A stretch of 63,629 bases of DNA, filler included, from Olpidium bornovanus S191 (Eukaryota > Fungi > Olpidiomycota), in NCBI GenBank assembly GCA_017911155.1. It is 31 parts of 31 records of this genome, joined end to end, with 100 filler letters (N's around TTAATTAATTAA, not from the genome) between each part and the next. Parts side by side here need not be neighbours in the genome. Positions count along the whole stretch, not along the records: positions 39,280 to 43,102 come from JAEFCI010001608.1; 30 more parts are not named here. One strand, given 5' to 3'. Below the pieces are notes generated by a model that did not search any database, was not told where the DNA came from, and saw nothing but the letters and a program-made list of their open reading frames with translations. A program made the translations under genes and the position numbers. Positions 39,180 to 43,337 of this stretch are shown one piece after another; the first letter of the stretch is position 1; every line of letters starts with the position of its first letter.

Positions 39180-40195
39180 NNNNNNNNNNNNNNNNNNNNN
39201 NNNNNNNNNNNNNNNNNNNNNNNTTAATTAATTAANNNNNNNNNNNNNNNNNNNNNNNNNNNNNNNNNNNNNNNNNNNNAATGTGCTCCGTGTGTCTGAA
39301 TGACCTGGTTCATTCATTACGCCCGGAATTTTGCACCGTACACGAAGCTGGTGACACGGAAGCACGCGTCACCCTTCTTCAGTGAGTCCGGGTTATCATG
39401 ACTAGCTCCTCCTCAGACTTGTTCCGTCAGCGCACCCTCCGTGGCTCATTCCCGTTCCACTTTAGGCTGCGTCGGTCTATCACCCAAGCTTTTCTTTGTG
39501 TCATGAATTGGCCGCCCATATTTTGGCTACCCTCAGTCTTCTCAATTTGAAATTCCTGTTTCTCCCATCAGATACGCAGTACTGCGGTCCAAACGGTTGT
39601 CGTGATTAAAACTATGACTCTCAGCCGGCCCCGGTCGCCAATGACAAGTTATAGTGAAGTCCGTGCGCTCATCTGTTCAATCTCCCTGCCCCAACCAGAC
39701 ATGGAGCTTTCTGACGACACCCCATGCTGGTGTCGCCTTGTGCTCGCGAATCGGGGTTCCCGGCGCCTCGTCAGAACGCCGCAAGAGGGCCCGAAAAGAC
39801 CTTGGTGTCATGGCCGCTTGATAACTCCGTCGACCAAACTGGTTTCAAGGCCCCCGGAAAATGGTCCGTGAGAGTCGGCAAAGATGTGGACGCCCTTGGC
39901 GTGTAACCGTGTCGGGCACTGGGTGTGGGAACATTTTTTTCTGCCGGCCCTAGCAGGCCCAGCTTCATAGCAAGGTCCTCCTCCAGCGCGGATGGGGCGA
40001 GTCCTTTTCTGGGGGGATTTAGGCGGTGCGAGACCGCGACGAAAAGCGAATGGAATGGGCCGCTGCTGCCGCCGCGTTGGGAAAATGTCTCCCTGCGCTG
40101 CATCGGGGGGAGGGGGAGAAAAAGGGGGGATGGGGATTTCTCACACGCACGCGCCTCCCCCAAACGGAAGGAATGAAAAGGAAAAGGAAAAAACC

Positions 40196-40226
<31 letters not shown>

Positions 40227-40235
40227 AAAGAAAAA

Positions 40236-42110
40236 ATGGCTCCAACTCTGGACCCTTACCTCCACGACGTGCGGTCGGTGACCAACCTCGTCGAGGACCA
40301 CCGCCGGCTAGTGATTCTCCTGTCCGCCATCGGGGGGTCGATCCTGCTGCAAACCGCGGTGTACGCCGTCCTACGGGGCATAGCCCGCAACACGGAATGG
40401 ACGTTCGACGAGACGCTGGTCGCGGAGAGGTGCGCGAGGGGGATGCTACGACCTGACTCCCGTGCGGCCGCCGGGCTACGACCTGACTCCCGTGCGGCCG
40501 CCGGTTCGCATCTCTTGTCGGCTCGCATAAGTGCTTTTGGGGCACCTGTGGCCCCGAAGTGCCGTCCCTTCGCTGCGTAGCCGGCCGGCTGAGCACGTTC
40601 ACTCCACCCCCGCTTCCCCCTCCTGCCCACTGCCCCCCGCGCCTTCCCGCCGATTACGGCAGTAAGTGGCCCACTTTTGTCCTCTTCCCAACGTTGGGAG
40701 CCAAGATCGCCTGGCGGCACGCGAGTTACGTCGATGACGACGAGACGAGAGAGCTCGTCCAGCGGATCCTCACCGTCCTATTGCTGCTGGAGCTCGCCTG
40801 GCTTACGGTGCGGGTGACGCAAGCGGAGCTTTCCGTGCTGGCCAAGCAGAACGAGTGGGCCGCCGACCAGGGCAGCGAGACGTGGAAGAAGCGGAGGGCA
40901 GCCACGCAGATCTCTGCGCTCAGGAATATGTGCAACTTCTTCGTCGTTTTCGGCGCCCTGTGCGCGGTCATGTTCACATTCCCCACCGCCTGGCAATTCG
41001 GGCTGAGCATGATGGCCAGCGCAGGTGCGTGAGGAGAAACCCCGGCGGCGTCGCGGGCGCAGCCCGACCGCAGTCACCTCGGGGTTGACCCTCGTCTCGT
41101 CCGCCGACGCACCGGACCGCCCGTGCCGCACGACAAAGGCGCGGCGGGAGTGGTGCTCGGCCTTGCGGCCAGGCCCGGCCTTCAGAACGTGATTTCGGCG
41201 CTGATCATTGGTGAGATCACGTTTCCCCGAGTTGCAAGGAAAATGAGGAAGGGGGGAAACTACGACGCCTCCCCCTTTTCCCCCGTAGGCTCGCCGCTGC
41301 TGACCGCCTGCCAAGCCGTTCCCCGACAGCCTGCAGCCACGGCATGACGCTGGACGACGAGCTCGTGGTCGAAAACGAGTTTGGCCGCGTGGAAGACATC
41401 AAGTCGCAATACGTGGGTGGGTCGGCCGGCTGCCCCGAAACGCCCTCTCGTTTTGGGGAAGTCCCGGATAAAAGAAAAGAAAAGAAAAAAAGAAGAAAAA
41501 AAAAAATTTGCTCACGCGTCGCCGTCGAAACCGGACCTTCCGCCCGCTTCCCCGCCCTCTGCGGCCGCCCCTTTTCCCCCCCACACACGCAGTGTTCCGC
41601 ATATGGGACGGCCGGCGGATGATCCTCCCGCTCTCCTACTTCACCGCGAAGCCCTTCCAGAACTGGACAAAGACGTCGACGTGGAAGATCGGCACCGTGT
41701 TCTTCTACTTCGCCCCGCTGATCCTCTCCCGGATGGGCCAGCTGCGCGAGCAGGTGGTCAGGCTGCTGACCACCAACGACGACGCGCGCCGCCTGTGGGA
41801 CGGCAAGGTCTTCTCCACACAGGTGACCAACGTGATGCAGGACGGCGGAGTCGTCGAGGTCCGCGTGCTGGCCAGCGCGGCCAAGGGAGGCGACGCCTTC
41901 GACCTCCGGTGTCTGGTCCGCGAGCACGTCATCGCCTTCGTCGTCGACAAGTGGCCAGACGTCCTCGTCCGCTCCAGGAACGAGGCGAGGATGTTTGCCG
42001 ACGAAGCCAACGTGTGGGACGTCGGCGATTCCGTTGACGACGACGCCGACGCGGGGAACAGCAAGGCGGTCGTGGAGAAGGAGGTTTTCGAGCACGCCAA
42101 AGGCGAGTGA
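40236..42110 (+). CDS. Small-conductance mechanosensitive channel (MscS family, bacterial-type), 5 exons, complete
   Basis: Exons 40236-40429, 40663-41024, 41139-41210, about 41330-41417 and about 41593-42110, all GT-AG. Product includes RRAATQISALRNM...MFTFPTAWQFGLSMMASAGAAGVVLGLAARPGLQNVISALII and LDDELVVENEFGRVEDIKSQYVVFRIWDGRRMILPLSYFTAKPFQNWTK...VEVRVLASA..GGDAFDLRCLVREHVIAF. Confidence 0.92.
40445..40504. repeat. Perfect 30-bp tandem duplication in MscS intron 1
   Basis: GCTACGACCTGACTCCCGTGCGGCCGCCGG x2. Confidence 0.95.
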
Positions 42111-43337
42111 CCAGCACGGTTCCCCGGAGAGGGGGGAAGGGGGGGAGACGGGAAGGGGAGGAGGAAGTGGCCGGGGGGAACAGATCCGTCGACTGTAGCG
42201 CGCTGCGCACGCGCTCGTCGAAAACGCAGAAAACCGTTCGCGTTTGTCCCTGCCCGATCCCTGCCGACGCCCCTCACATCATTGCGGGCGCGAGGAAAGG
42301 AAGAAACCCCGACGGGGCCCTTGTTCCGTCGAACAGGAAAGCCCTGACCGCAGAAGTTGCGTGCGCCCGGGGAGGGACGCACCTCACTTTCACGAGCTGA
42401 AGACCGTTAAATCTTCCTTTTCAAGAGCTGAAGGCCGCGTGCCGGAATGAGTCGCCGCAGAAAGCCGGCCGCAGAGTAGTGGGCTTCCGGGAACGTCCGG
42501 CGCACTTCTCTCGCAATGTGAAACACACACCTGTCGCGGTGGAGCCGAAACTGCGGGACGAACGAACGGCGGATTGCGAAGGGGCGGAAGGTCGTGATAT
42601 TTGGAGGTCCAGTGTCCCCTCGAGGGATAGGGGGATGGGAAAGGGGAGGGCGGAACACGACGTCGGTGCTGTGCCGAGGAACGTTTTGCCGGAAAAATGA
42701 CGGCAACCGAGGCCGCGGGAAGGTTCTTTTCCGCGAGCCAAGGTGGACCGGAGCAGCGAACGACGCCCGGCGAGGGCCACAGGGGCGGGACCTGTGTGCG
42801 AGTGGTCAGCGAGGCGAGATCTGCGCATTATGCGAGCGAGCACGTGTAGGTTTTACGTGCAGGCCACGTTGGAGACCTGGAAGGTCGACTTCCGCGACAG
42901 CGCACGCGGCCGGGCGTTCGACCGTTTTGGTCACGTAACACAAGGTTTCTTAGGGAGTCCAACGACAGTCCTATTGCCCGGGATGGCCTTACCAGCGGGA
43001 AGCCCATCGCACTGTTCGGGGAGAGATCGTGCCCTTCCCCCCCCCCCCCCCCCCCCCTCTCCCCGGGGCCCCCACCAGACACGCGGGGGACGGGACCAGA
43101 ATNNNNNNNNNNNNNNNNNNNNNNNNNNNNNNNNNNNNNNNNNNNNTTAATTAATTAANNNNNNNNNNNNNNNNNNNNNNNNNNNNNNNNNNNNNNNNNN
43201 NNCATGTAAAAAAAAAAAAACCAGGAAAAAGGTAGAAAAGAACGGGAGGAAGAAAAACAGTTGAAAAGGGAAATAAAGGAAAAGGGAGGGAAAACAAATT
43301 CGGGCTAGGCGTCTCGCGGCTTGAATCTCGTGACGAC

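Follow-up and report, generated by a model that had tools for sequence, protein, structure and literature searches.

A spliced nuclear gene for a bacterial-type MscS protein in Olpidium bornovanus, probable member of an old fungal family of single bacterial origin

Background

Olpidium bornovanus is a root-parasitic zoosporic fungus. The window analysed here, a stretch of 63,629 nucleotides (nt) joined from 31 parts of its genome (strain S191, assembly GCA_017911155.1), carries at positions 40236-42110 on the plus strand a five-exon open reading frame (ORF), the product of which is predicted to be a 410 amino acid (aa) protein of the MscS superfamily of mechanosensitive channels, and of bacterial subfamily type. 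How such a gene came to lie in the assembly of a fungus is the question raised by this locus: it could be a contaminant, a recent bacterial gift to Olpidium, as the initial annotation implied, or an older fungal possession. Taken together, the evidence makes it probable that a nuclear, transcribed fungal MscS gene of an old fungal family is at hand, derived from a single ancient bacterium-to-fungus transfer and not from a recent one into Olpidium.

Splicing in RNA

The gene lies on the piece at 39280-43102, which comprises the entire 3,823-bp record JAEFCI010001608.1. The sequence of this piece is present in runs of three studies, and Logan contigs of runs X1 and X4 (studies P1 and P2, respectively), at least 99 % identical to the piece, were mapped to it. 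All four introns are spliced out in RNA in these two independent studies, each joint being of the GT..AG type on the plus strand (Table 1); that of intron 4 is contained in a 639-nt X1 contig, with 87 nt on its shorter side. The exons had been read from the three-frame translation and agree with those of the initial annotation. Its model of five exons and four frame-restoring GT-AG introns is thus confirmed by contigs of both studies, and the spliced transcripts which it had named as a check exist for every intron.

Besides these joints, an alternative acceptor of intron 1 located 4 nt downstream (40429/40667, in X1) shifts the frame into a stop, and one of intron 3 located 41 nt upstream (41210/41289) extends the exon by 41 nt and likewise runs into a stop. 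The use of alternative 3' splice sites in introns 1 and 3 may represent regulated unproductive splicing or noise. Unspliced contigs were found across introns 1 and 2, in case of the latter at 40996-41166 (X1) and 40925-41199 (X4). Since the position and phase of intron 1 are homologous in other fungi (see below), the in-frame acceptor at 40663 is identified as the coding one.

Fungal orthologues

The nearest kin by phylogenetic tree are 13 other fungal sequences, from Spizellomycetales, Rhizophlyctidales, two Logan assemblies and Calcarisporiella thermophila. After the gene itself, exon 5 was best matched by the chytrids Borealophlyctis and Gaertneriomyces, and a word search from the latter retrieved Spizellomyces, Powellomyces, Thoreauomyces, Fimicolochytrium, Geranomyces and Rhizophlyctis (a word search with the sequence P0003 yielded 21 matches, dominated by low-complexity words). 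In the profile search, chytrid members scored at least 484 bits and the next match, a bacterial one, 345 bits; one further fungus, C. thermophila, was among the matches listed. Its orthologue (VTP21DRAFT_5152, 385 aa; MU987584.1, L087 4001-5425) has four introns, resides in a nuclear context and forms a long branch. Among the best 120-150 matches visible for each large search, no non-fungal eukaryote with a member of this subfamily was found.

Further support comes from exons 1 and 2, which are not part of the core trees (see below). The nine best blastp matches of exon 1 are all N-termini of chytrid proteins (aligned to chytrid residues 2-50), and the ten best matches of exon 2 are all fungal (58-72 bits vs at most 48 bits for bacteria; aligned to residues 50-167). 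The orthologues of chytrids and Calcarisporiella (e.g., Spizellomyces punctatus SPPG_02582, Rhizophlyctis rosea HK097_001470, those of Gaertneriomyces, Powellomyces and Geranomyces, and VTP21DRAFT_5152) have the N-terminal helices, two sequence motifs and a C-terminal tail motif in common with the Olpidium protein. The two motifs, S.W[KR]IG and FPTAW, occur in the fungal rows only among 381 sequences, and the tail motif reads EKEVFEHAKGE in Olpidium vs K/E-D-Y-F-x-G-L-A-R/S-G in chytrids. Identity to the chytrid orthologues across the core amounts to 41-47 %, and Olpidium keeps the bacterial motif KPFQNWTKTS, whereas the chytrids have diverged from it (e.g., S[ST]FENWSRRS).

The introns of four orthologues were mapped on their own loci for comparison. 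Intron 1 interrupts Olpidium codon 65 in phase 2, just before KWP, and the homologous codon is interrupted in the same phase in Spizellomyces (codon 49), Rhizophlyctis (codon 47) and Calcarisporiella (codon 48), the last being a non-flagellated mucoromycote. Gaertneriomyces does not have this conserved intron, which has either been lost there or is obscured by a different gene model. Olpidium introns 2 to 4 have no counterpart in these orthologues, and introns beyond the first are lineage-specific. Because the position of intron 1 is common to four fungi of three phyla, the orthologue family is considered old, and the fungal group, judged from these sequences, appears to descend from one intron-bearing ancestral fungal gene.

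These orthologues also bear on the provenance of the record. Contamination is a fair worry here, since the genome was derived from non-axenic zoospores washed off cucumber roots and sorted by a metagenome approach (PMC7865070). Bacterial contamination is ruled out, as the gene has introns, is spliced in RNA and has orthologues in fungi, in agreement with the initial annotation, which had regarded the gene as a nuclear eukaryotic one. There is a residual chance that the gene on its 3.8-kb contig belongs to another organism of the non-axenic preparation; speaking against this, the sequence represents a fungal lineage of its own, separate from the chytrids, and was found spliced in independent runs.

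Bacterial relatives and phylogeny

Among the matches listed, all named non-fungal relatives are bacterial or archaeal, and the closest of the non-fungal rows are encoded in neighbourhoods of bacterial genes. A HMMER search with exon 5 returned 1,408 relatives, the only one above 50 % identity being the deposited protein of the locus itself (P0001, KAG5462791.1), and a search against genomes returned 203 bacterial or archaeal loci with 40-48 % identity over exon 5, mostly from Bacteroidota. These relatives are about 360-380 aa long with the PF00924 domain at residues 185-250. Bacterial proteins are collinear on exons 2, 4 and 5 in tblastn (exon 5, E 5e-30 to 2e-31), exon 3 fits gap-free between exons 2 and 4 in the alignment, and the identity of the Olpidium core to bacterial proteins is 45-53 %. 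With the prokaryotic subfamily of about 350-380 aa (e.g., Kriegella aquimaris, L007 2326-3402; Asticcacaulis, P0203; Pontibacter, P0250; metagenomic P0183) the Olpidium protein is collinear over the full length without indels at the exon junctions, and it shares PF00924 as well as the motifs ASAG..G...G.AA, DD..V.E.E.G..E.I...Y...R.WD.RR...P..YF..KPFQNW and FDLRC.VRE; the bacterial subfamily motifs listed by the initial annotation are indeed present. It differs from these proteins in its four spliceosomal introns, a GC content at third codon positions (GC3) of 0.88, an N-terminal extension, the fungal-type C-terminal tail, and the motifs S.W[KR]IG and FPTAW. Some gammaproteobacterial members (P0020, P0048, P0051, P0073, P0116) are about 1,080-1,100 aa long, i.e., of MscK/MscM-like size, with the homologous core at the C-terminus.

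Phylogenetic trees of the core were based on 175 columns from the pore helix to the C-terminal domain, with Olpidium represented by residues 285-484 of P0001, the 16-aa intron-derived insert of which falls in dropped columns. In a FastTree analysis of 349 rows, the 13 fungal rows formed one clade (SH-like support 99). The mixture model LG+C20+F+G4 in IQ-TREE, applied with posterior mean site frequencies (PMSF) to 92 rows, recovered the fungal clade with an ultrafast bootstrap (UFBoot) of 99 and an SH-like approximate likelihood ratio test (SH-aLRT) of 98, in the order (Olpidium,(Rhizophlyctidales,Spizellomycetales)). Inclusion of Calcarisporiella (105 rows, same model) gave a clade of 14 fungal rows with UFBoot 99 and SH-aLRT 92, the bootstrap having not fully converged. 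A separate tree of the exon 2 region (125 columns, no overlap with the core) again contained one fungal clade (SH-aLRT 92). When E. coli MscS, YnaI and YbdG served as outgroup in a quick tree of 108 rows, the fungal clade was placed 13 nodes inside the bacterial rows. Thus, the phylogeny proposed as a check by the initial annotation yields a fungal clade inside bacterial diversity; instead of joining a broad eukaryotic MSL clade, which would have contradicted that annotation, the gene belongs to a small, exclusively fungal clade among bacterial sequences.

Origin of the gene

From the grouping of the orthologues and the common position and phase of intron 1 it follows that any bacterial transfer predates the divergence of these fungal phyla. 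The subfamily is otherwise prokaryotic, the fungal clade is nested inside it, and other eukaryotes are missing from the matches listed; the best reading, and a rather likely one, is therefore that the gene passed once from a bacterium to a fungus in ancient times and was later lost in other lineages. A bacterial gene of this MscS subfamily would have entered an early fungus once, and the transfer would have been followed by intron gain and then by many losses. The evidence leans, with somewhat more reserve, towards capture by a fungal ancestor predating the split of Chytridiomycota, Olpidiomycota and Mucoromycota, in which the phase-2 intron was gained and kept, with survival of the gene in few soil and root lineages.

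Several observations weigh against an ancient single transfer or against the gene as described. The Olpidium core is closer to bacteria (49-53 %) than to chytrids (41-47 %), and placing Olpidium with P0183, the most similar bacterial sequence, lowered the log-likelihood by 47.8 over the 175 columns without formal rejection in the approximately unbiased (AU) test (p = 0.056). The outgroup branches of the 108-row tree are extremely long, its root is therefore rough, and owing to this unreliability descent from a gene of ancestral eukaryotes, lost on a massive scale, retains some standing; other eukaryotic members may also lie beyond the matches listed. At the level of the protein, Olpidium has His-Gly directly after the pore helix, where E. 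coli MscS has Arg-Pro and the relatives retain a conserved Arg/Gln-Pro. At the level of RNA, the sole X1 contig across the intron 1 junction uses the frame-shifting +4 acceptor, indicating that some transcripts are unproductive, and the raw RNA runs X17 and X23 gave 0 reads, which is no test of expression, as about 6 % of each was sampled and only the species label is common with the runs that furnished the contigs.

The proximity to bacteria would be accounted for by a recent, lineage-specific bacterial transfer into Olpidium, with the grouping with chytrids being a long-branch artefact or the outcome of parallel transfers from similar donors. The highest core identity is indeed to a bacterial sequence (53 % to P0183), the KPFQNWTKTS motif is identical to the bacterial one and diverged in the chytrids, and the AU test leaves such a topology formally standing. 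Nevertheless, this scenario is highly improbable, considering the support of 99/92-98 for the fungal clade under the mixture model and its second recovery from the separate N-terminal region, the exclusively fungal best matches of exons 1 and 2, the phase-2 intron at the same codon in four fungi, the motifs restricted to fungi, and the C-terminal tail in common; in addition, a GC3 of 0.88 and the number of introns, four, suggest that the gene has long been resident in the genome. Accordingly, the Olpidium-specific horizontal transfer implied by the initial annotation is not supported, with orthologues in Spizellomycetales, Rhizophlyctidales and Calcarisporiella and intron 1 common with three of them.

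Great age, as indicated by three fungal phyla and a common intron, would also agree with a gene inherited vertically since an early eukaryote (e.g., since the mitochondrial ancestor or the last eukaryotic common ancestor), with loss in almost all eukaryotes and without a separate transfer. An unrooted tree with one fungal clade permits a root on the fungal stem, and an origin from organelles is assumed for other eukaryotic MscS-like lines, e.g., plant MSL1 to MSL3. Such descent is unlikely, however, as no non-fungal eukaryote is among the matches listed, outgroup rooting sets the fungi deep inside the bacterial rows, the identity to bacterial sequences, 45-53 %, is high considering so old a split, and profile searches provide no sequence link to plant MSL1/MSL10 or other solved eukaryotic channels. 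The many losses demanded by the ancient transfer could be avoided if the gene had entered from bacteria once, gained its intron and then spread from fungus to fungus among soil and root inhabitants. The very patchy range, with two chytrid orders that are sisters, Olpidium and one mucoromycote, would fit, as would the mismatch between the species tree and the order (Calcarisporiella,(Olpidium,chytrids)) in the 105-row tree. On the other hand, this internal order is unreliable owing to long branches, the branches between fungal lineages are as long as expected for ancient divergence (41-47 % identity), the gene tree within the chytrids follows taxonomy, and the remaining introns differ among lineages, rendering spread between fungi very unlikely.

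Gene structure and the deposited protein

The exons add up to 1,233 nt, i.e., 410 codons and a TGA stop at 42108-42110; their coordinates and those of the introns are compiled in Table 1. The GC content of the record ranges from 51 to 67 % per 300-nt window. The ATG at 40236 is the presumed start codon, the frame being open upstream through the poly-A tract. Reads are cut at this tract.

Table 1 Exons, introns and upstream tract of the Olpidium bornovanus MscS gene (positions along the window; splice joints as observed in RNA-derived contigs)
Feature	Position	Strand	Description	Evidence
A-tract	40188..40236	+	49 nt, abuts start codon; 5' untranslated or promoter region	Tandem-repeat scan
Exon 1	40236..40429	+	Residues 1-64 and 2 nt of codon 65; presumed start codon, predicted first transmembrane helix	Hydrophobic residues 24-46; X4 contig 40240-40429
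Intron 1	40430..40662	+	233 nt, GT..AG, phase 2	Joint 40429/40663 in X4
Exon 2	40663..41024	+	Further predicted transmembrane helices and beginning of pore-lining helix (FPTAWQFGLSMMASAG)	Frame translation, hydropathy; X1 contig 40665-41025; tblastn, L007 residues 79-171
Intron 2	41025..41138	+	114 nt, GT..AG, phase 1	Joint 41024/41139 in X1
Exon 3	41139..41210	+	Predicted pore-lining third transmembrane helix (TM3; AAGVVLGLAARPGLQNVISALII)	Aligned with E. coli MscS residues 101-124 and relatives; 65 % identity to P0183 (blastp)
Intron 3	41211..41329	+	119 nt, GT..AG, phase 1	Joint 41210/41330 in X1
Exon 4	41330..41416	+	First half of beta-domain (PF00924)	tblastn, L007 residues 195-223
Intron 4	41417..41592	+	176 nt, GT..AG, phase 1	Joint 41416/41593 in X1
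Exon 5	41593..42110	+	Remaining beta-domain, C-terminal alpha/beta domain, tail, stop codon	

The deposited protein encoded on the piece (KAG5462791.1 or A0A8H8A0K7, 'MAG: hypothetical protein BJ554DRAFT_3529 [Olpidium bornovanus]', 526 aa) is correct over about the last 225 residues alone, whereas its N-terminal 300 or so residues are wrong by comparison with the frame translations: its start is set at 39724, exons 1 and 2 are translated in frames 2 and 1, respectively, part of intron 1 is taken as coding, and 16 residues from intron 3 are retained. Due to the misreading of exons 1 and 2 and the inclusion of intron sequence, it is devoid of the real transmembrane helices. A further discrepancy concerns position 41713, where the RNA-derived contigs of X1 and X4 have A and the assembly has C (GCC to GAC, Ala279 to Asp); the Asp279 of the RNA version restores an Asp that is conserved across the whole subfamily (LY.D), and the difference reflects either strain variation or an assembly error.

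Some features of the record stand apart from the coding sequence. Within intron 1, a unit of 30 bp is perfectly duplicated in tandem (40445-40504). The X1 contigs skip 42428-42530 (103 nt with CT..AC ends), corresponding to a minus-strand intron of the GT-AG type just beyond the stop codon; it would belong to a convergent neighbouring or an antisense transcript, and no conserved ORF was recognised at this place. A long C-run at 43037-43058 lies close to the end of the contig.

Domains, pore helix and predicted fold

Statements on the Olpidium protein as a whole are drawn from its single exons, the deposited partial sequence and the orthologues. Exons 4 and 5 as deposited (P0001, residues 326-526) match PF00924 (MS_channel_2nd) with 26.3 bits vs a cut-off of 20.2 (E 8e-6), the match spanning profile positions 18-68 of 68 with the first 17 positions falling in exon 3. 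Scans of single exons against Pfam and NCBIfam and a phmmer search of PDB with exon 5 gave no match; as PF00924 is split over exons 3, 4 and 5, these blanks carry no weight against the family assignment. No EF-hand family was detected in the Pfam scans of any exon, and a long N-terminus is equally absent (410 aa, first helix from residue 24), in line with the view of the initial annotation that the protein is unlike Msy1/2-type channels.

Hydropathy suggests helices at residues 24-46, 96-117 and 153-175 in addition to the pore helix. The latter is Gly/Ala-rich, directly precedes the beta-domain and is presumably pore-lining, since GAAGVVLGLAARPGLQNVISALII aligns gap-free with G101-L124 of E. 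coli MscS (locus L089). The gate positions of MscS, 105 and 109, are occupied by hydrophobic Val and Leu, respectively, the Gly113 hinge is replaced by Pro, as in other fungi and the nearest bacteria, and Ala stands in place of Gly at position 121.

The AlphaFold model of the Spizellomyces orthologue (mean predicted local distance difference test score, pLDDT, 71.8) displays four helices at the N-terminus and a long pore helix besides the beta- and alpha/beta domains. All top matches of this model in a Foldseek search of PDB were MscS-family channels (YnaI/MscS, MSL1, MSL10, Flycatcher1), with probability 1.0 and E down to 2.5e-12. The sequence profile of the fungal group, when compared with solved structures, matched only bacterial MscM, MscS, YnaI and MscK, and these weakly (E 1e-7 to 1e-4). 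With regard to the NCBIfam equivalogs MscS, MscM, MscK and PRK11465, the orthologue and the bacterial relatives scored 16-43 bits against cut-offs of 321-991, and Olpidium exons 4 and 5 had zero equivalog matches. Because the matches to solved structures are weak and the equivalog cut-offs far off, the sequences are considered a distinct, unnamed MscS subfamily.

The subunit is predicted to comprise four to five N-terminal transmembrane helices, the Gly/Ala-rich pore-lining helix, the beta-domain and the C-terminal alpha/beta domain, and would most likely assemble into a heptamer by analogy with solved MscS-family channels. The putative channel would open on raised membrane tension and release solutes in hypo-osmotic stress; this role as tension-gated osmotic release valve is assumed from family membership only. 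The wall-less zoospore, suggested by the initial annotation as context for such a function, loses appeal, since Calcarisporiella keeps the orthologue and has no zoospores.

Relation to known channels and significance

The E. coli channels MscS, YnaI, YbdG, MscM and MscK have the fold of the Spizellomyces orthologue model, and in common with the Olpidium protein they have the aligned pore-helix pattern and the beta-domain, differing by the weak sequence relation and the two pore-helix replacements described above. With about five predicted transmembrane helices, the Olpidium protein resembles YnaI, while MscS has three. Msy1/Msy2 and the plant MSL proteins are members of this superfamily as judged by fold, the search with the orthologue model having retrieved MSL1, MSL10 and Flycatcher1; however, the fungal profile had no match to solved plant channels at E <= 1e-3, and Msy-type proteins are not among the relatives listed.

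MscS2 of microsporidia, a bacterially derived MscS gained by horizontal transfer and present beside eukaryote-type MscS-like genes, sets a precedent for the fixation of such a bacterial-type gene in a lineage related to fungi (PMC11262690). By description, MscS2 is set apart from the full-length Olpidium protein in being extremely compact, as the majority of its transmembrane helices have been lost together with part of the vestibule (PMC11262690). The fungal group would be a second case, beside microsporidian MscS2, of a bacterial-type MscS retained in a fungal lineage.

Literature searches for MscS of chytrids or Olpidium yielded no paper, and the small fungal family of bacterial-type MscS channels is apparently undescribed. 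For the public records, the present analysis corrects a gene model, the deposited 526-aa protein being without the real transmembrane half, and a suspected contaminant or recently transferred gene of a metagenome-derived fungal assembly turns out to be a genuine fungal gene. If the proposed origin is true, early fungi would possess an ancient family of ion channels that arose by transfer, has so far escaped description and differs from Msy1/2 as well as from MscS2. The transformable Spizellomyces punctatus offers a route to probing the role of such a channel in a zoosporic fungus.

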